Assembly (NCBI RefSeq): GCF_001194135.2
Contig: NC_069002.1
Span: 17,657,517 to 17,695,736, forward strand
Length of the DNA stretch: 38,220 nucleotides
Direction: 5' to 3'
Origin: Octopus bimaculoides
Lineage: Eukaryota
Made by a program: the position numbers and the translations under genes. Shown here one piece after another: positions 3,003 to 29,313 of this stretch. The stretch's first letter is position 1. Each line of letters begins with the position of its first letter. A model generated the notes under the pieces. That model did not search any database, was not told where the DNA came from, and saw nothing but the letters and a program-made list of their open reading frames with translations.

Positions 3003-3280
3003 TCAGTTTCTGTCTACAAAATCCACTCACAAGGCTATGGTCAGCCTGAGGCCATAGTAGAAGACACTTGCCAAAGGTGCCACACAGTGGAACAAACCTC
3101 ATCTTTTTTGACATCTACTATCGTCATTTTAATTATTTGCAATTCCCATTTCTGGACATCATCATTCTGTTTTGCTTAATCGCTTTTATATTAAGTTTTT
3201 ATTCATTTCATCTATTGCTTATATTTATTTCTCTGCTAAGGTCAACGTTAACTGGTATCCAATTATACTCCCTTATTCAT

Positions 3281-5030: not shown

Positions 5031-6121
5031 CTGAAATTATTTACCCAGTCAGATTGAAATGCTAACTCATTGAACTGTATCCACTAAAGACTATATTATA
5101 TTATATATACTCACATAATTTAATTATTACATGTTATCACAATTGTCTGATGAGTGATTATGCAAAACTCTGAGTAAGAGTTTGTGAAGATCTTTTCAGC
5201 TTTAATAAAATGGTATAGTTTCTGCCTTTGATATTTAAGTATTATTTTTAACACCTTGTTTTGCACTTATGTGCTTACTTGTGTGTGTATATATGTTGTT
5301 TTGTCATTTCACGATCTAGTTTAGCTTTAATGTGCTAAAAATATTATAACAGCTTGACTGTGAGAGAGTCTCATTGCACCCCATTGAGTTTGTTGTGTTG
5401 GATAATATTTATTCCTCATGTGAAAACACCAGATTCACTAGCAACTGGGCTTTTGGTGTTTCCACTGAACTTTGCATTGACCAACAGTCAGTATACTGTC
5501 AGACATTCCTAACTAGAAACTAGTCTTATCTCATTTTACAATAAGCCATGGACTATACTTCAATATATATATATATGATGCAACGTGTAATTCTTCTAAG
5601 GAAAATAGTTGTGGTTCTTATTATTGATTATTCTGCACAAGTGAGAGCCAAATAATTCAGTTGGTCAGCTTGCATTGATACCAACCACACTGTGATATTT
5701 AATATTGCTTAGAATAAAGTATATGCAGGACTGAAACAACCCAAACACTGCACACTGTCGATTCATTTATTCTGCACTCTTTTTTAAAATAGCTTTGGCA
5801 GAGGATGGAAGAGAAGTTATGATGACCCCTTTCAAAGCCTTCAAGCCTGGCCAAAATGTTTGCAACAGTGTGGACTCTTCTAAAGGTATTAAAATGATAT
5901 GTAATACAGGAACAGTTACTCCGATAGTCTTCTATGCAGTTTCTGTTAATCCAATTTCGCTCACAAAGCTTTGGTCAACCTGCAGCTATGATAGAAAACA
6001 CTTTTCCCAAGACAGTGCACGATCAAATAGTTGTTAGTGCCCATTACAAGATTGTAAGTGCAATGTCATCCAAACTTCTTTACTATGTATGTATAAATAT
6101 ATACACACACACAAACATATA

Positions 6122-7085
6122 TATCATGTCATCCCATAAGTTCTATCCAAATTTTGAATAAAGAAAACAAGTGATTGAATGTTATATTTAATTGAAATTT
6201 AATCATCAATGTACTTTCCCTGATTATCTATGACTTCCTTCCATCGATTTACAAGCTTTTTTAATCCCATCAATGTAAAATTCTTTTGGTTTCAAAGTGA
6301 AGAACTCTGAAATGTCAGTTTCGACCTCCTCCTGGCTTGCAAAAGTTATGTCCCCCAAATGATTCTGTAAACTATGAAACAAAAGGTAGTCTGAAGGAGC
6401 AAGGTCGGGAGAATAAGGTGGATGAGGAATTTTTTCCCAACCAAGCTCTTCGATCTTCTGTGATGTGATCTTTGCAGTGTAGGGTCACACATTGTCCTGA
6501 TGAAACATCACTCCTTTTTGATTCACTAAAGCCGATCTTTTTTCCTTCAAAGCTTGGTTCAAATGCTCTAATTGCTCACAGTAGACTTGAGCATTGATTG
6601 TTGCATTAGGTGGTAACAATTCAAAGTGAATTACTCCTTTGCAATCCCACCAGATAGAGAGAAGAACCTTTTTCCCATGAAGTTCCCTTCTCGGTTGTAG
6701 TTGAGCTTTTTCCCTTTTACCAAGCCACTGTTTACGACATTTAACATTTCGATAGAAGATCCATTTTTCGTCACCAGTCACAAGTCTATCCAAAAAGGAT
6801 GAAATAAGTTCGCGAGAATGGAGAGAATAGCAGATGTCAATTCGGGATTTGCAGTTGCTTTCGGACAATTCATGAGGCACCCATTTTCCAAGTTTAGGAA
6901 CCTTTCCAAGTTGTTGAAGATGACGGTGAACAGTTGTATGGTTTGAACTAAGCTTTATTGCCAATTCTTCAACTGATAATGCAGGATTTTCTTCAAGTAA
7001 TGCCTCAAGGAGCTTATCATCAAACTCAACTGGACGTCCTATTCGATCTTCATCTTCAAGGCCGAAATCTCCACTTCTGAATTTT
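6122..7085 (-). mobile_element. Mos1-like mariner (DD34D) transposase pseudogene running into an assembly gap
   Basis: ORF 6485..6964 contains TGDEKW, KVLLSIWWDCKG and FHQDN; downstream PHPPYSPDLAPSDY...HLG. TIR-like end tatcatgtcatcccataagttctatcc at about 6122. Confidence 0.9.
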
Positions 7086-7449
7086 NNNNNNNNNNNNNNN
7101 NNNNNNNNNNNNNNNNNNNNNNNNNNNNNNNNNNNNNNNNNNNNNNNNNNNNNNNNNNNNNNNNNNNNNNNNNNNNNNNNNNNNNNNNNNNNNNNNNNNN
7201 NNNNNNNNNNNNNNNNNNNNNNNNNNNNNNNNNNNNNNNNNNNNNNNNNNNNNNNNNNNNNNTTATGTTATTTATTATTAAAAAACAATACAAGAAATCA
7301 TTATTATTATTCATTTAGTTCATGATGTACAAGTATGTGTGTATTCATCAATATCTTATTTATTTTATACAATTTTAGAAAAATTGAAGTATATCTTTGA
7401 CAATTCCAGAGTGTATTGAACATATTTTGTGCATGACTTTTGACCCACC

Positions 7450-7497
<48 letters not shown>

Positions 7498-7679
7498 CTG
7501 TGTGTGTGTGTCATTATTCAATTTATTTCAAGATTTCTTGCCAATAGAGAAAGAACTGGTTTCTAATCTAGATCTAAGGCTCCTTCACTGGAACTTCAAC
7601 ATCAACAACAGGGTATGTATGTATGTATGTATGTATGTATGTGTGTGTGTGCATGTGTGTGCATATGTATGTATGTGCA

Positions 7680-8200
7680 GATTTGTATATTTTATGTATG
7701 TATTCTCATGCATATAGTTGCATATCTAGACATGCACATATTAAATGATAAACTTCTGGAAAGTTTTACAGATTTTTACAGTTCCAGTGATGGATTGGAT
7801 CTGTAGTCTTGAATTAGCTTTCTCCTTTCTGGTTTTGAGAAGCTTAATTTCTCGTGATTGGTATTTATGCAGTGTGTTACATATCCCAGGGACCCAATAA
7901 TTACAGGTATAAACCTGCAGATTGCTCAATAGTTCAGCATAGGTGTTCTCTTTTTCACTGATCTTCAGCTTTATGTTAACATCTGCAGGACAGCTAATTT
8001 CCACAACTATGCAGTTTCTCTTCTCTATCCCAAATCATTATATCAGGCCCGTTGTGCTTACATTTTATTGAGGTCTTCACTGGGACATTCCACTAGTATT
8101 CCTTTTCATTATAAGTGACTATGGCTTCTACCATATTGTGGGTTTTTATATCTTTGTCCTTGGGATTATCCTTCCGACAGATTTCGTTATAGTGTCCTAG
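7680..8200 (-). mobile_element. 3' end of a restriction-like-endonuclease (RLE) non-LTR retrotransposon embedded in (CATA)n
   Basis: Minus frames give KCKHNGPDIMIWDREEK, EISCPADVNIKLKISEKENTYAELL and LQIQSITGTVKICKTFQKFII* (stop 7741): the PD-x(n)-E/D-x-K type RLE core and C-terminus of R4/NeSL-group elements. Confidence 0.78.
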
Positions 8201-8356
8201 TATGTATGTATGTATGTATGTATGTATGTATGTATGTATGTATGTATGTATATATATGTATGTATGTATGTATGTGGTCCAACCCATGCCAGCATGGAAG
8301 ATGGACATTAAATGATGATGTTGATAATGATGATGTTTTATACATATATATATATA

Positions 8357-8725
8357 CAGGGTGTGATGGGTAAATTGTTGCCATTTTATATTTCTAATTT
8401 CATGCATGTGCATTGTTTGCTTTTGATTTTGTCGACTACACAGTATAGTAGGTTCAGTTGGGCACTATCTGTGAGAAAAACAGCACCATGATGCAATTCA
8501 GTCTGCCAGAACTTTGGAAACGACATACTGTAATGCTTGGCAAAGCTCCAATACAAATATTACAAGGAGTTTAGGTGTCAATCTGAGGACAGTGCAGAGG
8601 ATTTGGAAAGAGTTGGATGAGTCTAATGGTGATTAGGAAGGTACGGCAGCTTGTAAAACTCACTCTGATTGTTCTGATAAGAAAAGAACTCCTAAATTTG
8701 TTGGGGAGATCCAGGCCATGATTAA
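8357..8725 (+). mobile_element. 5' part of a Tc1/mariner (maT-like) element
   Basis: TA-cagggtgtg TIR start; frame NTNITRSLGVNLRTVQRIWKELDESNG...KKRTPKFVGEIQAMI is an HTH-type N-terminus. Confidence 0.65.
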
Positions 8726-9027
8726 CAGGGCTGACCAAAGCATTTGAGTGGATCTGATACATGGAAATTGAAAAAAGCCTGTTGTATGCATGTGTGAGTG
8801 TATCCTTGTTTTGACAACATGAGATGATTAGAAATAAGCATCATCCTTATACAAGTGGTGTTGTCTGTTTCCTGTCTTCCACAGTGAAATATTACTTTGC
8901 TCGAAAACAGCATAGGTTTGGCAACAGGAGGGGAATCTGGTCATAGAAAATCTACCTGAACAAATTCCATCTAACCCATGCAAACATGGAAAAGTAGACA
9001 TTAAATGATGACAATGGTGATATAGAC

Positions 9028-9353
9028 CAGGAGTTCTCAACCGGGATCCACATGGATTCCGGGAGTCCATATAAGATTTTGGAGGGTCCATGGATGCAAT
9101 ATATTAAATTGAGGGTCTATGGTAAGTTTTCAAGGACCCTGAAAAAATTGTGCTGCAGACTAGTAAAGTTTGTGCAATAACTTAGTTATACATCCACAAT
9201 ACACAAAATATTTTAGCAATTCTTATACAAGTCCTAATAATATTTAATTATAAAAATACAACAGAATTTTTAAACATCAAGTGGTAAGGGAGTCTACCCC
9301 AGTAAAATAGAAATCAAAGGGGTCCACAGGTAAAAAATGGTTGAGAAACCCTG
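9028..9353. mobile_element. hAT-type MITE
   Basis: Termini caggagttctcaacc and ggttgagaaaccctg. Flanks atatagac and (a)ttatagac resemble a decayed 8-bp TSD. Confidence 0.7.
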
Positions 9354-9644
9354 ATTATAGACAGACTGGTTGACAGCTTATGACATACAAAGACTTTCAT
9401 AGGCATAAAAACGTGTCTAATGAGTTAGATGCCTGCTATAGATGAGATCTTAATCACATTTGTCTGTCAAGGTGGATCCTTATTTGTCAATGGTAAGATT
9501 TAAACACGATCCTAGACAGCTTTGTTTCCTGCATTACATATAACATACAGCAACCAAAAGTATACAATCATACAGCTCATAACTCCAGCAATGGTGAATA
9601 AGGATCCACTTTTCAAGTCAAATGCAGCTTTTATTCACAGCAGA

Positions 9645-9945
9645 CATAATGATGATGATGTTGGTGATGATGATGATGATGATGATGGATATCATGATCG
9701 TAATGATGACAACAATAAAGACCACAATGACGATATTGAGACTATAACACTGAAGACTACAGCAACGATAATGATTATGATGTTGATGACAATAATGAGA
9801 ATGATGACAAAAATGAAGATGACAATGGCTACTACAATGACAATTATAATAATGATGGTGATGATGATGACAATGATTATGAAGATATTGATATGTATGA
9901 AAATGATAATGATAATGATGATGATGAAGACAATACTGATATCAA
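9645..9945. repeat. Degenerate (GAT/AAT)n trinucleotide tract
   Basis: Directly visible; explains ORF 9522..10019. Confidence 0.9.
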
Positions 9946-10059
9946 TAACAAGTTATGGTTATGTTCTAAAGAGCGCTGACAATACCGACTGGTGTTTTGT
10001 TGTTCAAGAACTTACATGATAATAGCCTAACTCCAACAGAATGTAGAATTCTGAGTCAT

Positions 10060-10545
10060 TAGCATTGAACAAATGATATTTGATGACAAAAGAAGTGTGA
10101 ACACTGAAGTCTCAGAGGATGATGATTTCAGAGGAATGCGAAGTGAGATATATGTCTTGAATTTAAAGAGTAGTAGAGAATGCAGATGTATTTAGAAGAA
10201 TAAGGGAGGTGGGATTAACCATGTAATGTCTTTGCTGCTGTTATCCAAGTAAGACTGGTAAGTCACACTTAGAGCAAATATCTCCTTTCACAGAAAAGTT
10301 TTAGCATAGTGTGCAGCCTGGAGAGCAGATTTGGACTTTAGATAAAGGGTAAATGATTATACCTGGACAGCAGAGATCTAAGATAAGGGTTAAGAGATTA
10401 TGCCTGGGAGCAGAGATGGGCTTTAGATAAAGGGAAAGAGATTTGTGTCTCAGAGAAGAATAGTATGTATGGTTTGTGTGTGAGTAGGAAGTGATATGTA
10501 AGGTCTGAGTTTGATAATATCCAAGGATATTAGGGCAAAATAGTA
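10060..10545 (-). mobile_element. CR1/L2-type APE endonuclease N-terminal fragment
   Basis: Minus frames HFLLTHKPYILFFSETQIS and SEIIIL*DFSVHT (decayed ET and GDFN motifs). 10250-10545 aligns to the reverse complement of 14165-14429. Confidence 0.65.
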
Positions 10546-10959
10546 ACTACTGTCATTTATGTAACTGATTTTTTGGGGGGCATTTTATATTTTATCATTT
10601 CATTCTGTTCCACACATTGAGCTGCCTTAAACAGTTTCAAAGTATCCTGATTTCTTCTTGCAAAGAGACTGCTAGCCCCTTAACATTTTCCAGTGTCTGG
10701 ACAAAGAGACATTATGAGCAGAGTGAAAGGCAGCCAATTCCAAGAAGAGAAGAATTTACCCCCGTATTAGACTGGTACTTTACTACTTCACCTTTGAAGA
10801 ATAAAAAGTAAAAGTGACCCCAGCAGAATTTGAACACAAAGGCTTGAGTTGGAACAAATACCACAATGCTCAATTTACTTAAATCCGCTACCGTAAATCA
10901 CTCATTTATTTATTCTTTACTCATATTCTTTTTATGATAAATCTATAGGTGAATGAATT

Positions 10960-11217
10960 ATTGGTTTCAAATTTTGATACAAGGCCAGTAATTTCGGGGG
11001 AGGGGGTATGTCAATTACATCAACTCCCGTGCTCAATTAGTAGTTATTTTATCTACCCCAAAAGGATGAAAGGCGAAGTTGACCTCAGCAGAATTTGAAC
11101 TCAGATGGACGAAATGCCACTAAGCATTTTGGCCAGTACACTGCCTATTCTGCCAACTTGCTGCATCATCATCATCATCATCATCGTTTAACGTCCGCTT
11201 TCCATGCTAGCATGGGT

Positions 11218-11282
<65 letters not shown>

Positions 11283-11495
11283 CCTTTCTACTATAGGCAC
11301 AAGGCCTGAAATTTTAGGGGAGTGGGCTAGTTGATTACATTAATCCCAGTGTCCAACTGGTACTTATTTTATCAACCCTAAAAGGATGAAAGTCAAAGTT
11401 GACCTCAGCAGAATTCGAACTCAGAACATAAAGATGGACAAAATACTGCAAAGCATTTTGCCCAGTGTGGCAACGATTCTGCCAGCTCACTGCCT
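10960..11495 (-). mobile_element. Two tandem S2 SINE copies separated by an RTE-tail stub and (CAT)n/(AAT)n
   Basis: 10960-11160 and 11220-11495 share ggtacttattttatc.accc.aaaggatgaaag.c.aagttgacctcagcagaatt.gaactcag. Confidence 0.85.
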
Positions 11496-11761
11496 TAGAA
11501 TCAATGAATTATTAATAATTTATCAGGTAACAGACTAAAGATCACATCTGCTATAGTATTGTTGTGGTGTATATTGCAGCATATACTACTTCTTATAAAA
11601 GTTACCCTCACACCCCGCCCACCGTCTTAAGGGTGGAGCCAAATATCGAGCTGATGGTGTTACTTTGCTTGCCAGAAATTGCAATCAAATTCCCTCATGT
11701 TGCCTACTACCATGTTAAAGGTAGAATGGATACATCTAGATATACAAAATACTGTGTTGAT

Positions 11762-12822
11762 CAGTGGGAAAGATTTGATTTTGTGCTCAAACTGAAAATT
11801 TTTCAGTCTCTTCTTTGAGTCCTGAGTTTCTTAACCATTGTTGGGATTTTACTTTGTCTATTTCTTTTCTGTTTAGCTTCACCCAATATTTTCCATGCTG
11901 GGGCTTTTCTTGCCATCATTTTATCAGGATATGTTGTTACACCAGTTATAGTTTGGATTTCAGTTGTTTTACAGCTTTTGTTGTTTCTTCTTTTTCTTCA
12001 TAGTTGTCAGGTACTATGACTTCTTTCTTGTATTTTTCAGCTACCTTAAAGACAGAAAACAATTTTTTGTTTTGCTCATGTTTTGTGGACATTTGTACCA
12101 GTTTTCCTTGCTCTGAATTAGGTATTTGTGTAATCTCATGGTGGTTATTTTTTATAATAGTTTTCTCGCTGTATAAGACCTCTACCACCTTCAATACGTT
12201 GTATATATAACTTTTCTATGTCAGATTTTGGGTGGTGCATCTTAAATTAAAGTCATTAGTTTTCTTGTTTTCCTGTCTAGTTTGATTAGTTCATTTAGAG
12301 TCCAGTTAAGAATATTGTAGCTGTAACTTATAACTGGGATGGCTAGAGTGTTGATAACTGTTATCTTGTTTTTCGCATTGAGCTCTGTTTTCAGTATTAA
12401 TCTAACTCATCTATAGTATTCCTTTCTTATTTTCTTTTTCATTTGTGTGTGTTGCATCGTATCTAGTTCATTGATTCCTAAATATTTTTATGACTGGCTT
12501 TGGTGTAATTCTCTTATTTCATTTACTTTATGTAGTGTGAAATTGTTCCTCTTAACTAGTTTTTCTCTTTTCAAGGTTGCACATTTTTCTATGCTGAATT
12601 TAAAGTTTATTTCTTTGGTAAATCCATGCACTGTTTGTAGTAATGTAGTAATGTTTCCAGCTATTTACCATTTGCAGTATACAGTTTTAGATCATCCATA
12701 TACAAGAGATGGTTGATTGTTTTGTCATAACAGTTGTATCCACATCCAGTTCTGTGTAGCATGTCAGATAAAGGTGCCAGTGCCAAGCAGAGAAGGAGTA
12801 GAGAGAGCGTGTCTCCCTGGAA

Positions 12823-12830
<8 letters not shown>
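11762..12830 (-). mobile_element. R4/Dong-clade LINE RT fragment, 5'-truncated at an (AAT)n tract
   Basis: Minus frames: FQGDTLSLLLFCLAL, HLLYMDDLKLY, KYLGI, AIPVISYSYNILNW, HPKSDIEKLYIQRIEGGRGL, WQEKPQHGKY, SQQWLRNSGLKEETE, AQNQIFPT. Confidence 0.88.

Positions 12831-12880
<50 letters not shown>
12831..12880. repeat. (TTA)n tract joining two Dong-like fragments
   Basis: Directly visible. Confidence 0.95.
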
Positions 12881-12882
<2 letters not shown>

Positions 12883-13290
12883 ACATTTGGTAGTTTCAGG
12901 CAAATTTCTACTGCGTCACCTCCTACACCTCTATGTTGCTGGGGGGTGTGCAGCATTGTGTGTTCTTTTTTGTGGCTGGGAGTGTGCAAATACTTTCTGG
13001 TATTGTATTGCATCAGTTTCTTTTTTTTTATGGGGTGTGGTGCAGTTTTTTGTTGTATTAGTGTTTGTATTGTGTGTTGGATGTGTAATGCGTTGGGTAT
13101 CTGGCTGCTGGTGGTAGTTTATTTCATTGGATATTTGCGAGATAGAGTGTGTCTTGTGTTTGTGAATTGTTTTGTTTAGCTTGCATATTTGAATTGATAG
13201 TGTCTTGCGTAGGATGTGAGCTGTTCCTTGTAGAGCTATGTTTTGGATCGTGTGTAGTGCGGAGGATCCAGATATAGCTTCTACATTTTT
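12881..13290 (-). mobile_element. Extreme 3' end of an R4/Dong-like LINE (ORF C-terminus and 3' UTR) with (AAT)n tail
   Basis: AISGSSALHTIQNIALQGTAHILRKTLSIQ matches the IQK..L.GTA.ILRK.L terminus of R4/Dong ORFs; ends ccaaatgttg-(aat)n. Confidence 0.8.
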
Positions 13291-13334
13291 GTTCATATTT
13301 CTTCTTCTACTCCTTCTTCTTCTTATTATTATTA

Positions 13335-13562
13335 TTAAGAAGGAGGAGGAGGAAGAGGAGGAGGAGGAGGAAGAAGAAGAAGAAGAAGAAGAAGAAGAAG
13401 AAGAAGAAGAAGAAGAAGAAGAAGAAGAAGAAGAAGAAGAAGAAGAAGAAGAAGAAGAAGAAGAAGAAGAAGAAGAAGAAGAAGAAGAAGAAGAAGAAGA
13501 AGAAGAAGAAGAAGAAGAAGAAGAAGAAGAAGAAGAAGAAGAAGAAGAAGAAGAAGAAGAAA
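13335..13562. repeat. Long (GAG)/(GAA)n triplet microsatellite
   Basis: Directly visible; source of the poly-E, poly-S and poly-L ORFs. Confidence 0.97.
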
Positions 13563-13639
13563 AAGCAGCAGCAGCAGCAGATGGAGATGAAGGAGGAGGA
13601 GATAGGTCCAAATTAACATGAAATATTTAGAGTACAAAC

Positions 13640-13746
13640 TTTTGTCTTCTAGAAATACTGGTCAGTCTATTATTTGAGTTGCTTTTGTGGCTAAATTTGT
13701 CTAAGAAGTTCGAATAATTAATGGATCCATCTGGATTTTTGTTGAT
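13640..13746 (-). CDS. Exon C (107 nt) of the EF-hand gene; encodes INKNPDGSINYSNFLDKFSHKSNSNNRLTSISRRQ
   Basis: Very strong acceptor ttattttgtttctttttctgcAG; phase 0 matches exon B; second EF-hand loop NKNPDGSINYSN plus FLDKF exiting helix. The donor is less certain: AA|GTttgt at 13639 preferred, CA|GTattt about 20 nt upstream possible. Confidence 0.75.
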
Positions 13747-14164
13747 CTGCAGAAAAAGAAACAAAATAAATGATGAGCCTCATAATCATCATTATCAACA
13801 TCACTACCACCATCACCATCAACAATAACAACATCATCGTCTTTACCACCATCACCGACACCATCATTTACATAGCTTATATAATTGCAAAATACATGTT
13901 GCTTGACCCTGGGCCTTCATATACCTGGTACTGCATTGTCTGATATATTGCTGTTGTATATGAGCCCCGCTTACATTTCTTTTTTTTTTTTCTTCTTGAG
14001 ATTGGTGATAATATATCATACCGCTTGATTTAACTCCACCCAATGGCCTGCTCCAGATAGACTCCAAGCAAGGTGTTATTATGACATCATGGCACACCAA
14101 CGCTTTTACACTTACCTAGATACTGAAAAATAATTGTCCACTGAAAAATTCTCCTTCCTCTTCT

Positions 14165-14429
14165 CTAATATTCATGGACACTATCAAACCCAAATCTTAC
14201 ATATCCCTTATTACTAACACACAACCCACACATACTATTCTTTGCTGAGACCCAAATCTCTTTCCCTTTATTTAAAGCCCATCTCTGCTGCCCACGCATA
14301 ATCTCTTATCCCTTATCTTAAACCTCTGCTGTCTAGGTATAATCACTTACCCTTTGTCTGCTCTCCAGGTTACATGCTAAAACTTTCTCTGTGAAAAGAG
14401 ATATTTGCCCTAAGTGTGACTTACCAAAC
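14165..14429 (+). mobile_element. CR1/L2-type APE fragment, interrupted by a Gypsy LTR
   Basis: Inverted homologue of 10250-10545; the alignment stops at aagtgtgacttacca, where tgtgggg begins. Confidence 0.65.
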
Positions 14430-15570
14430 TGTGGGGATGAAATGAGTGAGAAGGAAACGGCTGTGGCATCAATGGTCAAGGAGCCTGACCAGAACAGGAA
14501 GATGGAGAGAGAAACTGAAGGAAAGAAAGACCAGGGTCATCCCCTTTTGGCTTGCTGCAGTCGCTGTGAATGGACATCAGTGGAGCAAGCTAGCATGATT
14601 GGTAGTAGCAGCTGCTAATATTAGGGCACGAGTTTGGACTTAGCACAGCTGGACAGCCAACAATGAGAGGTAGGTGAACCGTATCTTATTTCCCCACATT
14701 ACAGTTCCCACATACCACAAGCTATTTCGGTTCTCATGTATAAATATATTCTTCCATTGTTGTTCCCTTCCATGAGATGGCAGCAAAGATAAAAATTGGC
14801 AGCAAAGATAAAAATTGGCAGCAAAGATAAAAATTGGCAGCAATGCTGTTAGACCTTTCTATAGCAAAGGATCTGTAGTTGCATGGATCCCTAAGATAAA
14901 CATAGTGGCCAGGCTACAAGGCATCGGCGATGTAGTGGGTCTCATAACCTGTACCTGGAGGAAGCGCATTGGCACTGTACCTTGAGATGGACAAGGAAGA
15001 CCAATTGAGTGCGGTGAAGACTGAGCAGCGCTTGAGGGAAGCCTATATGGAGGGAATGTATGCCATGATTGCTATGCTGGGAACAGTCATGTGGACAGGG
15101 GAACAGGTCAATGAGTATGTCAAGGAGGTTCGGAGACTGGCCATGCTATCTGGTTTTACCGGAGAGGTCTAGAGAAGGCAGCACAACTGGCCTTCATAAA
15201 TGGCTTTCTTGACAACATATCGGTGTCATTGTGCAGTCACTGCTCGTAGTTGAAGTCTTCGTTGGGGGAAAGGCATTCAAAGTCCTCATGGATACAGGCT
15301 GTACAACATCTCTCATGACCCTGAGGGTAACAAAAAAATGGAAGGGGACAAGTAGTGTTTGAGCAGTCGATGGCAGCAAAACTGGATGTAAGGGTATCAG
15401 TGGCATCAAGATAGTAGTGTGGGGCACAACATTGAAGCTGCAGGCGATTGTGATTGACCACGTGGTAGACAGAACTGACATAGTGATGAGCATGGACATG
15501 ATCAACTGCTTTGGAGGTGTCAGTGTCGGTGGAGACATGATTTCATTTGGTGGTGCGGGGGTGTCCCACA
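14430..15570 (+). mobile_element. Gypsy LTR retrotransposon 5' remnant (LTR about 14430-14772, PBS-like repeats, gag, protease)
   Basis: TGTGGGG start; gag-like WIPKINIVARLQGIG...ALALYLEMDKEDQ...RLREAY; aspartic protease FKVLMDTGCTTSLM...AVDGSK. Confidence 0.82.
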
Positions 15571-15867
15571 CTATGAGAGGGAGATAGAACTCCGCAAGGG
15601 ACTGTGCTGCTTAGAACCATTGACTGTGCTTACACTAATAGCAAGCTGCTTTCACTGGTTATGCGTGTTCTGCTTTTCATGTGGGTTACCATTACACATC
15701 CAACAGATCACATTGATTGTGTATCAGTTACAATTCCACGGAGATCTCCTATTCAATGGCATATATAAGCATCAGCTGTCATTACATAGCATCATACTTC
15801 TTACAGAGAATTTAGAATAAAAATCAGAAGCTGATCATTGAGAAAAGTAAAGTAACATAAAACTGAC

Positions 15868-15987
15868 CTTACAAACAATGTTTTCAAACACAGTGTCGGA
15901 AATATGTCCAAAGAACATCTCGATAACCTTTCGGAAATCCTTTACTTTGACTGAAAAATTCTTCTTTGTGTCAAAATATTTAAAACT
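15868..15987 (-). CDS. Exon B (120 nt) of the EF-hand gene; encodes SFKYFDTKKNFSVKVKDFRKVIEMFFGHISDTVFENIVCK
   Basis: Strong acceptor attctttttgttttttgcaAG and donor AAG|GTcagt; phase 0-0, 40 codons with no stop; lies inside track ORF 15835..16071(-). Pattern F-x2-F-D-x6-V-x3-D-F-R-K-V-I is a degenerate EF-hand followed by an EFCAB6-like linker helix. Confidence 0.8.
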
Positions 15988-16556
15988 CTTGCAAAAAAAC
16001 AAAAAGAATATTGGATTTAATAACACTGATAACATGCACACACACACACACACAGAGTCATTCAACACCACATAAGCTTTGACTGAACAAACCTGTGACC
16101 AAAATCTTTCTAACCATGGTCATTTATCTAAATTTTGGACCAAGTATAAAGAATTTCTAGATGCACTCCTTTCTTAAAGTCAGCTGGGTATCATTTATAA
16201 GATATTCGGTTATATTTTTAGCAAGTCTTGTTTACTTGTCAGTAATGATCATGTGATCATATTTCTATCAATATTTCCTCAGTGGTAAAATATGATCAAT
16301 TAAATTAGACATTTATAAGCTACACCTTTATTAACTAGCCTGCTATTTTCACTCCATTTTCTTTTTCAGTTCTAAGACATGGGCTACAAGACCACATCAT
16401 ACAAGACTACATCATACAAGACCACTTATGTTTCCTCTTTAGTACTGGGGATGTTTCAATTATGAAATAGGAAATATACATAGTAGGTAAACATACACCC
16501 CATACCCACAGTTTATACTTATATACAGGTAGAATAGTTAGTGGGTTGTTATGTAG

Positions 16557-16632
<76 letters not shown>

Positions 16633-17225
16633 AAATGCATATGTATGTAGGCAAATGGATATGAATGTAAACAGATAGACATACAGACAGATAGGTACAT
16701 AGGTAATATGAACAGACAAGCATACATACACAAATAAAGACTGAAACACATGACCATATACACACACACTTCACTTCACACAAGGACACATATGGAGACA
16801 CACATCCACACATATGGAGATACACATCCGTATATACAGACACAGTACATAGTTACAAAAACCCATATGCACACACATAAAAACACACAAACACGAACAC
16901 ATGAATATGCAGAATACATACAAACATACATACATATGCACACACACATACATGTATGCATACACTTACATACATGTGTATGCGCACACACACTGATCCA
17001 CACTCATGGGTACAAACAAACAAAAGAATACAGTTTGGATAACGGACAGAGTCAATGAGTATTGAAAAGGTTGCAAGGCAATGAAAATTTTAGGAAAAAT
17101 AAATAAGTAAATGAGTGGAAATTTTACCGGTGAACGTGTTGAATAATAAGGCACTAAAAGAGAATGACTCTCCCCAGACACAACAATATATATATATATA
17201 TGATGATGATGATGATGATGATATA

Positions 17226-17320
17226 TATTAATATTTAGCAGAAGTAACAGAGTGATTCAAAGTCTGAGAGTATTATGCTTGGACCTTGAGTCACTCAGTT
17301 ACTTCTGCTAAATATTAATA
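17226..17320. repeat. 95-bp foldback element (39-bp arms, 3 mismatches, 17-nt loop); probable miniature MITE
   Basis: Left arm tattaatatttagcagaagtaacagagtgattcaaagtc versus reverse complement of right arm tattaatatttagcagaagtaactgagtgactcaaggtc. Confidence 0.85.
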
Positions 17321-17394
17321 AAAATATACAAATACTCATATTCTGAGTTTTATTTTTCCTGCCTGCATTAACATACCTATATATATAGATATAA

Positions 17395-18600
17395 TTCTTT
17401 TTATTTACCCAGGCCTATTCCCCATTTCTTTAGGAAGGGGTAGCCACAACAAGACACACACCAGGCATTTCATTCATTTCCCAGCTCAAAGAAACGAGCC
17501 CCATTCTATGCTTGGATCAAGACATAGAACGCAACTCCCAATATTAGCAGCGGGGCCGAACAGCATATGCTGGTTTACCCCTGCCGCATCATGCTGNNNN
17601 NNNNNNTATTAGCAGCGGGGCCGAACAGCATATGCTGGTTTACCCCTGCCGCATCATGCTGATTCCATACCCCTTTGAGCAACATCAAATTCACTCATCT
17701 GTCCACAAACACTCTCCAAGCTTTCCTATCATTTATAAACTCTCTTGCCTCTCTCACTCCAACACCGCTAACCGCCAAAGCTTTCCTCACTCCATCCATA
17801 CACACAAACCAAGGTCTGCCTCTGGTTCTAGCTACCTACCACTTCTACTTTCATCACCCTCCTTACCATCTGCTCCTCATCCATCCTCTTCGTGTGCCCA
17901 AACCACCTCAACATTCATCTATCCATTTTGGTTGTTAGTTTTTCTCCCATTCCTGCTTGCCTTTGCACCTCCTCATTCCTCATCCTGCCCATCCGTATCA
18001 CACCAACCATAGCCCTCAAACATCTCATCTCAGCCCCCTCCTTTCCACCTCTCTCAGCTCTCACGTCTCTGCCCCATATAACATTGTCGGCACAATCACG
18101 CCCTCATACACACCTCTTTTTACTTTCATATTCAATCATTTATCTCTCAGCATACCTTTCACAACTCCCCTCCCTCCCTCTATATCCCACTTCCTCAGCC
18201 AACCCCACCATCCCAGATACTTAAAAACACTCACCTCCTCTAACATCTCACCATTTATACTCACATCCATCCTACCGGCCATTCCATCTCTCGAACATCT
18301 CATCCCCTTACTCTCAGCTACATTCACTTTCAGTTTCCTCCTCTCACACACTCTTCCAAACTCTATCACCAGTCTCCTCAGTTGCTCTTCCGAATCTGCC
18401 ACCAGTGCTGTATCATCAGCAAACAACTGACTCACCTGCCATTTCTCTCCACTTTCTCTCACCATTTGGGTTCCCCTACCAAAAGTTCTAGCATTCACCT
18501 CTCTCACCACACCAGCCATATATAAATTAAACAGCCACAGAGACATCACCCAACTCTGTCTTAACCCCACCTTCACATCAAAGCACTCACTTCACCACCC
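17395..18600 (-). mobile_element. Second RTE-clade LINE family, RT to 3' end, decayed
   Basis: ORF 18136..18576: VGLRQSWVMSLWLFNLYM, QLFADDTALVADSEEQL, KVNVAESK, FKYLG. There is no Cys/His insert between motifs 6 and 7. Confidence 0.85.
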
Positions 18601-18654
18601 ACCCTAACACATGCCCTACTTTCTCTATAAAATATATATATTTATATATATATA

Positions 18655-18972
18655 AGGGTAAAGACCCCTTTTGGTTATGAAAGTTTCCCTCCAAGGCACA
18701 AGTCCAGGCAAGATTGTTTGTGGAAAACCAGCAGTCACCCATGCATATCAGTCTCCCCTTTCCATGCCACTGATGTTATCCAAGGGAAAGGCAAAGACCA
18801 ATACAGCTTGGCACCAGTGAAATCACAATTCAATTCTACAGTTTAGTGAACTGGAGGAACATGAAATAAAGTGTCTTGCTCAAGAACACAACACACTAGC
18901 ACAGTCCAAGTATCAAACTTACTATCTCACAATTATAAGCCCAATGCTCTAACCACTGAACCATGTGCCTTC
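18655..18972 (-). mobile_element. SINE family S3 (gaaggcacatggctcagtggttagagc head)
   Basis: Reverse-complement homologue of 21203-21538 (tRNA-like A box, ttcttgagcaagacactttattt body). Confidence 0.85.
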
Positions 18973-19282
18973 ACACACACACACACACACACACACATGT
19001 ACATGTGAGTGTGTGTGTGTGTGTGTATGTGCATGCATATACATAGACATGCACACACACACACACACATACCACATCAACTAACCACATCACACATCTA
19101 CCACATCAACTAACAAGGATTTGGTCAGTCTGGGGCTATATAGTAGGAGACAAATACTCAATGTGCTATGCAGTAGGACTGAACCTGAAACCATATGGTC
19201 AGTAAGTGAACTTTTTACCCACATAGCTATGCCTGCACCTATTTATGATATAAATTGTAAGATGATAATTTAAATTATATAC

Positions 19283-19353
19283 CTTAAGAAAGTCTTCAAA
19301 CTTTTCTCCAACAAAAGCTCGCAAACCATTCTCCAAAGCAAAAGGCTCAGATC
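19283..19353 (-). CDS. Exon A (71 nt) of a spliced EF-hand gene, EFCAB6-like; encodes (G)SEPFALENGLRAFVGEKFEDFLK
   Basis: Minus-strand acceptor aataaatttctatttccAG and donor AAG|GTatat. Open in the phase 1 to phase 0 frame; joins exon B in frame to give the EF-hand entering helix DFLK|SFKYFD. Confidence 0.72.
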
Positions 19354-19432
19354 CTGGAAATAGAAATTTATTCTGAATAATTTTCAGAGAAATATATTTT
19401 ATTTATACAAGATTGTTTCAATGACAACAATG

Positions 19433-19633
19433 TTAACCTTTTTGTTACCATCTTTCTTTTGAAATACACTGCCTTAGTTTCAGTCAATTTTGAAAGTAAT
19501 GAAAGAATTTAATAAAATGATGTGATTATTAGGCAGGTGCAAGAGAAAATTTGAATTTCAATAACATTAGAACAGGAAATTCATATCATAAAACCAAGGG
19601 CAATTTTAGGCAGTGGGGTATGAAAATGGTTAA
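19433..19633. mobile_element. piggyBac-type MITE
   Basis: TTAA-cctttttgttacc ... ggtatgaaaatgg-TTAA termini. Confidence 0.6.
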
Positions 19634-19661
19634 AGCTATTTAAAAGCAACATCTGAATATA

Positions 19662-20425
19662 TAGGAAGTCCCTAAAATCTGGACACACAGGAAATCTCAT
19701 TAACTATGTTTTTTTATCTAGGAGTGGCTGTGTGGTAAGTAGGTTGCTTACCAACCACACGGTTCTGGGTTCAGTCCCACTGCGTGGCACCTTGGGGCAA
19801 GTGTCTTCTACTATAGCCTCGGGCCGACCAAAGCCTTGTGAGTGGATTTGGTAGATGGAAACTGAAAGAAGCCTGTCGTATATATGTACATATATATATA
19901 TATATATATGTTTGTGTGTCTGTGTTTGTCTCCCCAACATCGCTTGACAACCGATGGTGGTGTGTTTACGTCCCCGTAACTTAGCGGTTCGGCAAAAGAG
20001 CCCGATAGAATAAGTACTAGGCATCCAAAGAATAAGTCCTGGGGTCGATTTGCTCGTCTAAAGGCGGTGCTCCAGCATGGCCACAGTCAAATGACTGAAA
20101 CAAGTAAAAGAGTAAAAGAGTAAAGAGTATATTTCATATATTATATTTTACCTATATATTTTTTACTCAATGAAAATCACAGATGCAACACACTTGATGG
20201 AAGGCATAAAGAGTAAATATGCTCAAATTGATGGCAATGTAGAGTTATTGCATCGGGTTCACATGAATCTTACAAAGTGCACCGACCTTTGCATCACAAA
20301 TGGTGGAAATAATATTGAAGATGTTATTCATTAATATTCCAAATGAATAAAATGGCGTTGAAAATTTTATGTGTATTTCTTGAAAATGAACTATTTGCCT
20401 GTGTCCAGACTTTAGGGACACCTTG
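19662..20425. mobile_element. Non-autonomous Tc1/mariner element with a nested S1 SINE
   Basis: Left gtccctaaaatctggacac matches right gtgtccagactttagggac (inverted); TA on both sides. Confidence 0.7.
19720..20128 (+). mobile_element. Full-length tRNA-derived SINE family S1
   Basis: ggagtggctgtgtggtaag (A box), gggttcagtccc (B box), internal (TA)/(TG) tract, tail aaggcggtgctccagcatggcc...(AAAGAGT)n; homologous to 29314-29717. Confidence 0.92.
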
Positions 20426-21202
20426 TACAAACAAAATAGAAAGCTTCAGTTTTGAGCCTACAATGCCCATCGGCTGAGACTGAAACCTGGAAAAGAGCCA
20501 AACCAAGGCAAAAAAAGAAAATTTATTTTTAAGTAAAATATGTCATTGTATTTTTAAGTAAAAATATTTAATTTTAGGTGCAAAGTCTTGGTGGCTTCCT
20601 TATATCATTTCCTTGGACAACATTAATTACAGTGTCGTGAGATAGATAATGTGAAATCATCATCATCATCACCATTTAACATCCATTTTCCATGCTGGTA
20701 TGGGCTGGACAGTCTGACAGTTGGCAAGGCCAGGAGCCATACAATTGTCTGTTTTGTCATGATTTCTACAGTTAGGTGCCCTTCCTAATGCTAACTACTT
20801 TACAGATTGTGCTGGGTACATTTTATTTGACACCAGCACCAGTGCTTTTTATGTGATACTAGCACCAGTACTTTTCACGTGACAGCAACACCAGTGCTTT
20901 TAGACTGATACCAGCACCGAGAGAGTCACCAAGTACCTTGCAAAACAAAAACCCCTCAACTGGAAGGTAGGAGTAGTATTGAAGAGGTGTTGCTTTGTGC
21001 CAGTTGAGAGATAAAAGGTACAGGGGAGAGAGATAGGTGTCTTGCTATTGAGTAGATACATGGATACCCCAGCTGGAAAGCAAAGGAGAGTGAGTTAGGG
21101 AGTAAGATAAAGAGAGCAATAGGGAGAGAGATGACAGCAAAGATGTTTCAGGACATGCCCTCAAAGGATATTAGAGTGGTAAGAATAGGCGAGGTGATAT
21201 AT

Positions 21203-21538
21203 GAAGGCACATGGCTCAGTGGTTAGAGCATTGGACCCACAATCATGTGGTAGTGAGTTTGATTCCCAGACAGGGCTGTGTGTTGTGTTCTTGAGCAAGA
21301 CACTTTATTTCTTGTTGCTCCAGTTCCCTCAGCTGTAGAAATGAGTTGCAATGTCACTGGTGTCAAGCTGTATCAGTTTTGTTATTCTCTTGAATAACAT
21401 CAGTGGCATACAGAAGGGAGGCTGGTATGCATGGGTGACTGCTGATCTTCCATTAACAACGTTGCTGGACTTGTGCTTTGGAGGGTAACTTTCTAGGTGT
21501 AATCCCATGGTCATTCATGGTCAAAGGGGGTTTTACCG
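21203..21538 (+). mobile_element. Full-length SINE family S3
   Basis: tggctcagtggttagagc A box, gagtttgattccc B box; homologous to 18655-18972. Confidence 0.87.
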
Positions 21539-21784
21539 TTATAGTGGTTTGAGATGGTTGAATGGGCAGGATGTGGTGACTGTAACAAATGATGGAGAGA
21601 AATGTAGGAGAGGCTCAAGGCAGCGGTTGCAGCAAATACATGAGGACACTGAGGGTGATAGTAGGTAAGCAAGGTATTAAAGATGGAGAACAGCACAGGG
21701 GTGAGAAAGCACAGAAAGGTGGTGTTTGGTGGAGACAGCAGACAGAGTATTATGTCTTGAGTTTGAATATCTCATTGCGAATAA

Positions 21785-23140
21785 TGTTATGACAATGTTG
21801 GGGTGTGCACAAGGGTATAGAATAGTATTACCCAAATAAATATTTGGATATGGTTATCTGGAATAACCTTTCACAGAATTAATATGCTCATACAGAACAT
21901 ACTCTGTACTATACCAAACGTAGGTCCGATATTAAACTGACACAGTAATCCAATGTGCACAATCAACACTGTCAATTGCTGACTGTCAACTACCGACAGT
22001 TCACACAGTTTCTTCATTTTATTGAAATGCATCGGTCCACTTTTGGTCAAGTGGGGGTGGTCAGTATCCTTCCACAACATCTCGCATTTTTTGAGAACTA
22101 CCCTCCCATAACTTCTCCCCCTTTTGAGAATTAAACCCTGTCCAGAGTTTAATATCTCTTACACTTAGGGTTTAATTCCAGTATTTCCATTCTTTTCCAT
22201 TTTCTGTTATTTGAATGTGTACTTTCAATTTGAGACCATTTATTCCATACATCTTTTTTAAGGTGATTTATATGTCTTTAAGTTCAAAATATTTTCCTTT
22301 TACCAAGAATTTTTCAATTTGTTTAATAATTACACCATCCTCCCACCTTTCTTTACATATCTATATGATTTTAAAAAAACTTTGTCACCTATCATAAAGA
22401 ATTTTGAAGTATATTTGTTGTTTGCCATTTTTCTTCTTTTACTCAGTATCAACTTATCAAAGATGGATCTAATCTTTCTAGCAAACATTAATTCCACAGG
22501 TGACATTCCAGACAGGGTATTCAGATTAGATGATACTCGGTACACTCTTAGAAATTGTTGAAGTGCTAGGTCATCCATTACTTCAACGTTCACCGTTTTC
22601 TATGCTTTCTTAAAAGTACCAACAAAATGCTCCACTTGTCCATTTGACCTAGGATGATATTGTGGAGTGGTGACATGTTCAATAACGAACATTTTACAAA
22701 ATTTTTTGAACTCATCTGGAGTAAACTGAGTTCCGTTATCAGACACAATAATGTCAGGAATACCATATCTGGTGAACAATTCATGTAAAAAAACTTACTG
22801 TAACTTCAGATGTCAGCTTTTTACATTTATGCACTTCAGGCCACTTAGAAACACTGTATAACACAACAAGGTAATATGAATCCTTAAGTGAACCTATGTA
22901 ATCAACGTGCAGTCTGGTTGATGGAATATCTATTTTTGACCACAGTTGCTATTTTGTGGTTGGTGCTTTTAAAGCTAGGGCACAACTTCTGCAAGCTTTC
23001 ACTAGTTCTTCAATATCACAGTTCATTGTTGGCCAATACGCATAACTTCTCATTAACGATTTCATTCTCAAACTCCCTGGGTGACCAATGAGAAATTCCT
23101 TTAATAATTGCTTGTTGTCGTGTGGCTGGTACTACAACTC
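21785..23140 (-). mobile_element. Gypsy 3' remnant: integrase, PPT and 3' LTR (about 21785-22113)
   Basis: Minus frames GHPG..RMKSLMRSYAYWP, SKWPEV, RYGIPDIIVSDNGTQF, YHPRSNGQVE; PPT aagggggagaag; LTR bounded by (t)gttatg...cataaca. Confidence 0.87.
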
Positions 23141-23540
23141 TTTGTGCATACCGTGATCATTGCCAGAGCAGCTGTCTGGCTTCTGCGCCAGTGGCATGTA
23201 AATAGCACCATTTGAGTGTGATTGTTACCAGCGTCGCCTCACTGGCACGTGAAAAAAACATTCAAGCGAGATCGTTGCCAGTGCCACTGGACTGACTCCT
23301 GTGCAGGCGGCACGTAAAATACACCATTTTGAGCGTGGCCATTGCCAGTACCGCCTGACTGGCCTTCATGCCAGTGGTACGTAAAAGCACCCACTACACT
23401 CTCGGAGTGGTTGGTGTTAGGAAGGGCATCCAGCAGTAGAAATTCTGCCAGATCAGATTGGAGCCTGGTGCAGCCATCTGGCTCGCCAGTCCTCAGTCAA
23501 ACCGTCCAACCCATGCCAGCATGGAAAGCAGATGATGATG
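23140..23540 (+). mobile_element. RTE LINE 3' UTR fragment with internal ~55-bp degenerate repeats and (GAT)n tail
   Basis: 23342-23535 is nearly identical to the reverse complement of 35821-36060. Confidence 0.88.
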
Positions 23541-24516
23541 ATATATATATATATATATATATAATGAGCTTCTTTCATTTTCTGTCTATCAAATTCAAGA
23601 GACTATAGTTGGCCTGGATCTACAGTAGACAATTACCTAGAGTGCCATACAGTGGAGCTGAACCCAAGACCATGTTGTTAGGAAGTGAACTTCTTAACCA
23701 TGTAGCCATGCCTTCACCTATACTAATGCCTGTACCTATAGCCAGGCCTATAGAAAATAAGGTCTCATATATGTATTATAGAGATTCGGAAAACTTTAAG
23801 TAACTGATTACCTATAAAATTAGTAAACAAAATCTCCCTTTAACAGTGCTAAAGGATGTTTAAAATGTAAAAATAACAACGAAAGAGGATAACTCACTAA
23901 CTATCAACTAAATGAAATTTTTGGAATAGAAGAGAGGAGTGATTCTGATCTTTACATTTAAGGAAGAAATAAGTATGCTTCAGACTTATTGGGCCCTCTT
24001 CAATGAAACATTTTCTCAGTTGGCAAGGCTTAAAAGTGATCAGTATATATAGAAATAGAGGGAACACAGTAACACTGATTATTAACATCAACAATATGCT
24101 AAAGGAATTACCCCAAGGGAATGTTCTGCATACAAAATACACATACAATAAAGCCTTACATATGCAAAATAGTAAGATAATGATTTCAATTAATTGAAAT
24201 TATCCAAGCAATTAAGACAAAATCTACCTCAAAAGAGGTTAAAAAAACCAAAACTAAAAATAGCAAACATGGGAGATAACTTCAATAAAATCAGCTAATT
24301 AAAATTTTTGGAAACTAAACATGAAACAAATAGAAGTCAAACTCAGGTTTAAAAACTTGCTTTGATTTACCAATTATTTGTCAATTTAACTAATTATTAG
24401 TCAATGTGCTTTAGAATATTTTTGTTTATCTATTGTTACATTGATACTCTTCAATCATTTGAACAACAAAAATGTGAAACTCAGAGTTATCATTCAGTCT
24501 CAGAGTAAGCTTTAGT

Positions 24517-24706
24517 GCACTGTCATGGTATTAGCTGTCAAAAGATAGACAGACAGACAGACAGATAGATAGATAGACAGACAGGCAGATAGATAGCTCC
24601 GGTCAGTCAGTAGCCAAAGAAACAGATTTCAACTCAAACCAGCAGTAACGTTCCTTGTTTAGATTTTTCTACTTTCACTTCTGACAGCTAATACCATGAC
24701 AGTGCC
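24517..24706. mobile_element. MITE with 24-bp perfect TIRs and 9-bp TSD (Mutator-like)
   Basis: gcactgtcatggtattagctgtca (24517-24540) and tgacagctaataccatgacagtgc (24682-24705); agctttagt at 24508-24516 and 24707-24715. Confidence 0.8.
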
Positions 24707-25549
24707 AGCTTTAGTGTCTAAAACAATACAAACACTCCATTTTGTGTATTGAGTACTTTTTCTCTGTTTGTTAATACAAATGCTTACTTGTCCATATGGA
24801 TTGAAACTGTTCCCCCTTTTATTATCCTAAGCTTATTCATAGACATACACACACAAAAATTATATAATATAAATATATGTGTGTACATGGATAAATGAAC
24901 AGACACACACACATACACACAGTACATACTCAGATACTTGTGTATGTGAATGCACATATGCACAGACATTGACAAGCACTTATTCATATATACACATAGA
25001 AACACAAATGGACACATACACACACACACATAAACTTTCACACAGACTTGTACACTGGTGCATGTACACACACACACACATACACACAGATGCGCATACT
25101 ATTCCATTAAACATATCCTGTTGCTGTCAGTTTTGTTTCTCTCTCTCCCTCTCAGCTTCCCCTCTTCTCTCTCTCTCTCCCTGTTTCACTCTCTTTTATT
25201 TTTCTCCTTCATACTCATCATTGCTACTTATCTTTCTCCTTTTCTTTTCTCGTAATTTCTCCTCTCCCTGCTTCCAATGACTGAGTCTTGACCAATGTTA
25301 AAATAGATGCTTAACATTCCTTTGAATGTGACTGACGAAGCTAAGTGCATGATTCGGAAATAATTTCCAAGCTCAGCCATCCAGATGCATTAGAACAAGA
25401 TTCAGTTGCCTCTAGCTTGGTTTGATTCCTCGAGATTATGGCTTCATCTTGCATAATTTAATTCCTTTTTACAACAGGGTTGGGTTTTATATTAGATCCA
25501 CATACCATACATTAATTGTCTGCATACAGTTGTCTATATCTGTATGTGT

Positions 25550-25551
25550 AT

Positions 25552-25608
<57 letters not shown>

Positions 25609-25634
25609 TGTAAGAGAGAGAGAGAGAAAGAGAG

Positions 25635-25679
<45 letters not shown>

Positions 25680-25758
25680 ACGAAAGAGAGAGAAAGAGAG
25701 AGAGAGAAAGAGAGAAAGAGAGAGAGAGAAAGAGAGGGAGAGAAAGAGAGAGAGAGAA

Positions 25759-25791
<33 letters not shown>

Positions 25792-25794
25792 TAA

Positions 25795-25827
<33 letters not shown>

Positions 25828-25838
25828 AAGAGAGAGAA
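25550..25838. repeat. (TG)n plus (GA/GAAA)n compound microsatellite
   Basis: Directly visible. Confidence 0.95.
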
Positions 25839-26225
25839 AGTTTGCACATACAAGCATATTTGCACACACAAACAGATACATGTACATGTATATATGTATG
25901 CATGTAACCCTATGTATATAAACATATATACAAATAAATGTGTGTATATACACACACACACACTTCATTTCTTTGTATTTAGTTTGTAAGATTCTTGTTG
26001 TGAAACAAATCTTGCTGTGTCTTGGCATAGAGACTTTCACAAGACTCGATAAGATATGTATATAGGGAGAATTCACAAAAAAAAACAAAAGACAAAGACT
26101 GGTGGTGTAGACAACAAACAGATGTATTAGTTTAACACTCAGGAAGTGAAAAAGTCTTTAATGTTTCGAGCCTATGCTCTACAGAAAGGAATATAGAAAG
26201 AAACAAGGAGAGAAAATAAAGAATG

Positions 26226-28816: not shown

Positions 28817-28831
28817 ATATATATACATACA

Positions 28832-28866
<35 letters not shown>

Positions 28867-29020
28867 GCATTATATACCATTAGTGTGAAAAATCCTAAAT
28901 GTTAAATTTTACTCATAATTCGCCTGAAGAAAACTATTTTTCACATTATTGTGTAATTGATTTGTTCATCAATAAAAAACACATGTGAAACAGCTATAGC
29001 GAACTTCCGCCCATTTGTGT

Positions 29021-29074
<54 letters not shown>

Positions 29075-29077
<3 letters not shown>

Positions 29078-29287
29078 TAGTACCTCAGTTTTCGAACAAC
29101 TCTGATCACGAATAAATCAGGCTTTATATATGTATAGATAGATGTAGATATATATAAAGCATGATTTATTTGTTATCAGAGGCGTTCGTAAACCAAGGTA
29201 CTACTGTATTAAATGAATATGAGAAAGACAGAAGATAAAGCACGATTTATTTGTGATCAGAGCTGTTCGAAAACCGAGGTACTACTC
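29075..29287. mobile_element. Tigger/pogo-like MITE with ~52-bp TIRs and a duplicated right end
   Basis: TA-cagtagtacctcagttttcgaac left TIR; right TIR copies at 29155-29206 (followed by TA) and 29236-29287. Confidence 0.75.
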
Positions 29288-29313
29288 TGTGTGTGTGTGT
29301 ATATATATATATA

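Follow-up and report, generated by a model that had tools for sequence, protein, structure and literature searches.

Three internal coding exons of the Octopus bimaculoides EFCAB6 orthologue in a transposon-rich genomic stretch

Does a stretch of 38,220 nucleotides (nt) from the Octopus bimaculoides genome (contig NC_069002.1, positions 17,657,517 to 17,695,736 of the forward strand; in the following 'the window', with position 1 being its first letter) hold part of a working multi-exon gene at positions 13640-19353? A mechanical list of open reading frames (ORFs) of at least 80 amino acids (aa) contains none of the three small minus-strand segments in question, referred to as exons A, B and C, because they are only 24-40 codons each. 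An earlier interpretation of the letters alone (the sequence-only reading) had nevertheless assigned them to a hidden gene of the EFCAB6 type, i.e., to a protein with many EF-hand pairs. We find that exons A-C almost certainly belong to the Octopus bimaculoides orthologue of EFCAB6 (DJBP), in which they are internal coding exons that follow directly on one another. Taken as a whole, i.e., as three internal exons of octopus EFCAB6 that encode unit 1 of 11 and likely an axonemal structural module, the reading has high confidence. Exons and gene are already known, since the same exons are annotated in RefSeq.

The segments show regular splice borders and join in frame. Exon A (19353..19283, minus strand, 71 nt) follows the acceptor tttccAG and ends at the donor GTATAT. 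It contributes bases 2-3 of Gly46 and then S47-K69 of XP_052831670.1, which form the lead-in helix and the start of EF-hand 1. Exon B (15987..15868, minus strand, 120 nt, phase 0 at both ends) follows a T-rich tract with the acceptor ttttttgcaAG, ends at the donor GTCAGT and encodes S70-K109, i.e., the end of the incoming helix, loop 1 (DTKKNFSVKVKD), the exiting helix, a linker and the incoming helix of EF-hand 2. Exon C (13746..13640, minus strand, 107 nt; acceptor ttctgcAG, donor GTTTGT) encodes I110-Q144 plus the first two bases of Asn145, which covers loop 2 (NKNPDGSINYSN), its exiting helix and the linker to unit 2. Spliced together, the exons read as a single frame that yields a 98-aa peptide composed of SEPFALENGLRAFVGEKFEDFLK (exon A), SFKYFDTKKNFSVKVKDFRKVIEMFFGHISDTVFENIVCK (exon B) and INKNPDGSINYSNFLDKFSHKSNSNNRLTSISRRQ (exon C). 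The codons split at the outer borders also fit the RefSeq model, with Gly46 divided as G/GA at the start of exon A and Asn145 as AA/N at the end of exon C. Beyond exon C, the RefSeq protein runs on as ...RRQ/NSRL..., consistent with AA/gt at the donor. In a tblastn comparison, identity between the window and the public model ends exactly at all three proposed exon borders, and the junctions 19283/15987 and 15868/13746 are those of the RefSeq model. The claim of three minus-strand exons with AG/GT borders that join in frame is upheld by the reading of the letters and by the tblastn borders; the earlier peptide was reproduced, with the tail of exon C in addition.

Which protein do the exons belong to? 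EF-hand calcium-binding domain-containing protein 6 isoform X2 of Octopus bimaculoides (XP_052831670.1/XP_052831671.1; 1,289 aa) was the top match (E = 2e-61) in an exhaustive HMMER search of 1.84 billion representative proteins, and its residues 47-144 match the spliced peptide with 100% identity. The same residues are numbered 65-162 in isoform X1 (XP_052831669.1; 1,307 aa), which is 18 residues longer than X2 at the N-terminus; an older RefSeq accession for octopus EFCAB6 is XP_014777448.1. Other top representatives named EFCAB6 come from a crinoid, paddlefish, Lottia, frog and amphioxus. The homology check that had been proposed for the peptide, by HMMER and Pfam, thus leads to octopus EFCAB6 itself, with the Pfam family EF-hand_11 scoring above its cut-off. 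The exhaustive search was needed here: a word-indexed search with the 98-aa peptide gave no match even though the identical protein is in the same collection, and a negative from such a search is not readable as absence.

The description of the gene as 'hidden' holds in part. It is absent from the prokaryote-style ORF track, as had been said, but RefSeq annotates exactly these exons, and nothing in the RefSeq models differs from the window, i.e., peptide and exon borders are identical. Part of the region is missing only from the UniProt entry A0A0L8GXP6, which at 1,197 aa is the shortest public model of three. It begins at a Met ('MFFGHISD') inside exon B and therefore lacks the initial 23 codons of this exon as well as all of exon A, both of which are included by RefSeq. 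The practical point is that A0A0L8GXP6 is N-terminally truncated relative to the exons described here.

Next, we consider the evidence for the EFCAB6 family that comes from models and structures. The Pfam model PF08976 EF-hand_11, which was built on DJBP/EFCAB6, scores the peptide with 28.0 bits (cut-off 21.7) and the whole 1,289-aa protein with 109.4 bits in 4 stretches. For the peptide, the generic EF-hand pair model stays below its own cut-off, and EF-hand_7 reaches 26 bits. Among sequences in the PDB, the five best matches to the peptide are all EFCAB6 chains of doublet-microtubule structures solved by cryo-electron microscopy (2e-26 to 3e-20). The chains 9cpc_1P, 8i7o_Q1, 9fqr_3 and 7rro_t match at 2e-26 to 8e-24, and centrin at 2e-8, where the EFCAB6 scores are sums over about 12 repeats and the best single repeat gives 17-19 bits. 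The full octopus protein finds EFCAB6 as its best PDB matches as well (1e-76 to 2e-88, with bovine 7rro_t at 2e-88). The C-termini of the two proteins are collinear (octopus residues 939-1286 vs. 7rro_t 1170-1496).

The modest single-repeat scores could also be taken to mean that the exons come from a small calmodulin- or centrin-like EF-hand gene, or from a multi-EF-hand family other than EFCAB6; centrin and calmodulin sequences in the PDB do match the peptide at about 1e-8 to 1e-6, and the EF-hand_7 score fits such an origin too. Calmodulin, centrin and troponin C indeed share the helix-loop-helix pair fold with octopus unit 1. They are, however, small proteins with canonical Ca2+ loops and without a lead-in helix, which is specific to the EFCAB6 type of unit. 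The peptide, in contrast, is found with 100% identity within a protein of 1,289 aa that comprises 11 such units and has EFCAB6 as its best PDB matches, and every fold match at E <= 0.001 is EFCAB6/DJBP (see below). These results refute a calmodulin- or centrin-like gene, and we give the whole alternative practically no chance.

The assignment to EFCAB6 agrees with the architecture of the protein. With a hidden Markov model of unit 1, 11 units are detected in the octopus protein at a spacing of about 110-120 aa, the first of which (residues 48-139) is encoded by exons A-C. The four orthologues from crinoid, Lottia, paddlefish and frog, about 1,520-1,535 aa long, have 13 units each by the same model. 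Exons A-C together encode residues about 47-144 as the first of 11 tandem units, all of which consist of a lead-in helix and an EF-hand pair. That is, the octopus sequence is a large protein with at least 10 tandem units of this kind, of which only unit 1 lies inside the window. The AlphaFold model of unit 1, built with an alignment of 12 orthologous first units, has a mean predicted local distance difference test (pLDDT) score of 82.9, with values above 89 at residues 11-80 of the peptide. It contains five helices, i.e., the lead-in helix (3-16) and helices at 18-28, 38-49, 54-62 and 74-81. Short strand contacts are seen at position 8 of both loops, and from residue 85 on the peptide has a disordered tail. 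A Foldseek search against the PDB returned six matches at E <= 0.001, all of them EFCAB6/DJBP crystal structures (5d67 and 1wlz; template modelling score 0.66-0.86, root-mean-square deviation 1.1-4.2 Å), while calmodulin-type pairs are at least 100-fold weaker as fold matches.

Mammalian EFCAB6/DJBP (chains 7rro_t, 9fqr_3, 8i7o_Q1 and 9cpc_1P; domains 1wlz and 5d67) shares the repeated EF-hand_11 unit and its fold with the octopus protein. Its collinear C-terminal third is well conserved, while identity to octopus unit 1 is about 20-30%. The first units of bovine and mouse EFCAB6 align with octopus unit 1, and their loops are degenerate too. The closest other mollusc found is Lottia gigantea (V4B8D3/XP_009064370.1; 13 units, 1,532 aa), in which the lead-in helix and Gly6/Ile8 of loop 2 are conserved with octopus. 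The lead-in helix is conserved in the orthologues in general. The sequence-only reading had called the helix-loop-helix pair with its lead-in the repeat unit of EFCAB6-type proteins, and the EF-hand_11 score, the best PDB matches by sequence and by fold, the RefSeq name and the conserved and modelled lead-in helix all bear this out.

Does unit 1 bind Ca2+? A canonical EF-hand loop follows the pattern D-x-[DNS]-x-[DENSTG]-[DNQGHRK]-x-[LIVMC]-x-x-x-[DE] (PROSITE PS00018). Loop 1 (residues 29-40 of the peptide) reads D29-T-K-K-N-F34-S-V-K-V-K-D40 and departs from the canonical loop by Lys at the liganding position 3, Phe at position 6 and Asp instead of Glu at position 12. Loop 2 (residues 65-76) reads N65-K-N-P-D-G-S-I-N-Y-S-N76, with Asn at both position 1 and position 12. 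By direct reading, loop 1 fails the pattern at Lys3 and Phe6 and loop 2 at Asn1 and Asn12. This includes the two departures that had been pointed out before, i.e., Phe6 in loop 1 and Asn12 in loop 2, both of which are read directly from the sequence. In the orthologue alignment, Lottia loop 1 likewise has Lys3 and Asp12, while it differs from the octopus Asn and Phe by Asp at position 5 and Gly at position 6. Gly seldom occupies position 6 of loop 1 among the aligned orthologues, and at the first position of loop 2 the others have Pro, Glu, Val, Thr, Asp or Ser. Much of the octopus degeneracy thus recurs in orthologues, such that the degeneracy of unit 1 is a family trait rather than an octopus oddity. 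Given these loop residues, it is reasonable to expect that unit 1 probably binds Ca2+ weakly or not at all. With both loops degenerate at liganding positions, its most likely role would be to provide structure or to bind proteins, not to sense Ca2+ with high affinity.

Alternatively, unit 1 could be a working Ca2+ sensor, in which loop 1 binds Ca2+ or Mg2+ via Asp1, Asn5, the backbone carbonyl of position 7 and Asp12 and contributes to the calcium regulation of ciliary or flagellar beat. The Asp at position 1 is invariant across the 12 orthologues, positions 5 and 12 are still oxygen-bearing, and it has been suggested that EFCAB6 may play a role like that of the calcium-binding inner-junction proteins of algae (PMC8595878). 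Set against this are the Lys at a liganding position and the bulky Phe in place of Gly in loop 1, the Asn at position 1 of loop 2 and its Asn12, which replaces a bidentate Glu, and the failure of both loops to match the canonical pattern. We consider such a sensor unlikely and continue with unit 1 as a putative structural module.

Where would such a module act? EFCAB6 is a microtubule inner protein whose de novo identification comes from doublet microtubules of bovine trachea, where it is the main mammalian addition at the inner junction (PMC8595878). In mouse sperm, it is found on protofilament A13 in the B-tubule with a 16-nm periodicity, and every copy touches CFAP52 (PMC10663601). The mammalian protein is thus placed in the lumen of the B-tubule, on its ribbon and inner-junction side, and this axonemal location is known from bovine and mouse only (PMC8595878, PMC10663601). 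By homology, motile cilia and sperm flagella of the octopus are likely to contain EFCAB6 as a microtubule inner protein. That is, the octopus protein would sit in the axoneme of these organelles as mammalian EFCAB6 does.

A few points weigh against the reading as a whole. Loop 1 retains Asp1, Asn5 and Asp12, so some binding of Ca2+ or Mg2+ is possible. The predicted splice junctions rest on a computed RefSeq model together with protein conservation across phyla. The axonemal role would be one transferred from mammals, and a literature search found no paper on EFCAB6 in octopus. Finally, nuclear roles are reported for mammalian EFCAB6/DJBP as well, i.e., binding of DJ-1 and of the androgen receptor.

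How far does the gene extend? On the 37.7-Mb chromosome record of GCA_001194135.2, the EFCAB6 gene range spans 289,179 nt, and the window holds only exons A-C of it. A tblastn search of the window with the full RefSeq protein (E up to 10) yielded these three exons and no other. An exact look-up of 5- and 6-mers from the first 370 residues of isoform X1 added only a few chance 5-mers, and phmmer of the peptide against all six-frame fragments of the window found no further repeat units. The exons for residues 1-45 were not found in 19354..38220 either. More of the EFCAB6 gene within the window is thus rejected as a candidate. With no other exon in the window, the minimum intron lengths are 18.9 kb upstream (19354-38220) and 13.6 kb downstream (1-13639). 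The earlier expectation that the gene continues beyond the three exons through transposon-filled introns is confirmed by the gene range of about 289 kb and by the fragments of long interspersed nuclear elements (LINEs), long terminal repeat (LTR) retrotransposons and mariner elements in the introns.

Such introns also invite the thought that the exons are a dead remnant, i.e., a pseudogene or an exonised fragment, and that the public model is a mis-prediction which strings them together. The protein model is computational, it has 11 units where other animals have 13, the shortest public model omits exon A, and the introns are heavily invaded by transposons. Yet exons A-C are open, in phase and canonically bordered, and unit 1 retains residues that are invariant or nearly so across phyla (D29, F25, V44, G70, Y74, F77 and L78). 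Unit 1 is furthermore modelled with high confidence, and the full model is an uninterrupted protein of 1,289 aa whose C-terminus is collinear with mammalian EFCAB6. We regard a dead remnant as very improbable and keep to functional exons of octopus EFCAB6.

The introns themselves are composed as follows. Intron A/B (15988..19282, minus strand) spans 3,295 nt in the window, a length that drops to about 3,230 nt without a gap artefact. It contains (TG)n/(CA)n microsatellites, a gap of 10 N and a decayed LINE-type retrotransposon with frameshifts and stop codons (17698..18591, minus strand), whose reverse transcriptase (RT) fragment at 18139-18591 scores 36.5 bits with PF00078 RVT_1 and whose 3' part points toward the gap. 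The gap (17597-17606) lies just past the 3' end of this element, and the end of a decayed LINE is a typical place for an assembler to break. Exon A is 1,677 nt away from it and exon B 1,610 nt; as the gap is inside the intron, it is crossed by no reading frame and cannot affect the frame of the exons. The gap is flanked by an exact 55-nt duplicate (17542-17596 = 17607-17661; 17542..17661 in total), such that the contig ends overlap. In the genome, the sequence most likely runs through without a break, which makes it 65 nt shorter than in the window. A second 10-N gap (37786-37795, within 37734-37847) is also flanked by exact duplicates, with about 52-55 nt for the two gaps. Judged by these flanks, both are most likely negative-length assembly artefacts with no missing sequence.

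Intron B/C (13747..15867, minus strand, 2,121 nt) holds a retroelement fragment on the plus strand that resembles gag and aspartyl protease (14948-15584; a weak Asp_protease_2 score of 18.6 bits) and a 19-nt tandem repeat (14778-14843). The next intron contains a (GAA)71 microsatellite (13352..13565, plus strand, 98% pure), which starts 75 nt downstream of the exon C donor and reads (UUC)71 in the EFCAB6 pre-mRNA. The tract is long enough for triplex or otherwise unusual DNA. It could influence splicing or transcription of the 289-kb gene.

The downstream intron, of which 1..13639 (minus strand) is the start, runs off the window and carries a mariner fragment, a LINE copy and repeats like short interspersed nuclear elements (SINEs). 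The mariner-type transposase fragment (6485-6964, minus strand; Pfam Transposase_1, 103 bits) adjoins a gap of 177 N (7086-7262). The upstream intron, whose end is 19354..38220 (minus strand), runs off the window as well and contains an LTR integrase, an RT/RNase H piece, a LINE RT and three N gaps. Its LTR-retroelement integrase (H2C2 and rve domains; 22603-23131, minus strand) and its RT/RNase H piece (26690-27432, plus strand) lie in opposite orientations. The latter is bracketed by a 176-nt direct repeat (26390-26565 and 28641-28816, 86% identical), which could represent LTR remnants or part of a nested insertion. At 36506-38203 (minus strand) lies a LINE RT that is followed by a Cys-rich PHD-like finger, 'RWPCxICRKGxxRNSIRCT'. 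A second copy of the same LINE (3701-5032, minus strand) is 79-90% identical to 36504-37910 and belongs to the downstream intron, i.e., the two copies sit in introns on opposite sides of exons A-C.

Several short interspersed repeats are present 3-5 times in the window. One of them has at least four copies (3003-3099, 19725-19871, 29559-29712 and 34791-34944; 84-93% identical), of which one lies 370 nt upstream of exon A; the longer segments 19720-20132 and 29305-29717 are 93% identical. A search for tRNA-derived SINEs with ARAGORN found no tRNA-like structure anywhere in the window.

What does the locus mean? It illustrates that real eukaryotic exons, their junctions and their family are recoverable by eye in a place where an ORF list of the prokaryote type is blank. 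With regard to the biology of the octopus, the finding only restates the existing RefSeq annotation. One further question concerns the length of the octopus model, which has 11 detectable units in 1,289 aa compared to 13 in about 1,500 aa for paddlefish, frog, Lottia and crinoid. This may be either a real shortening or a model with exons missing. It is doubtful, though conceivable from the residues and unit counts, that octopus EFCAB6 is truly shortened to 11 units, that its unit 1 is wholly without Ca2+ binding and that the Lys3/Asp12 form of loop 1 is a trait shared by molluscs. If this were true, a shortened, non-Ca2+-binding octopus EFCAB6 would be a purely structural brace inside the doublet microtubule of cephalopod sperm and cilia.

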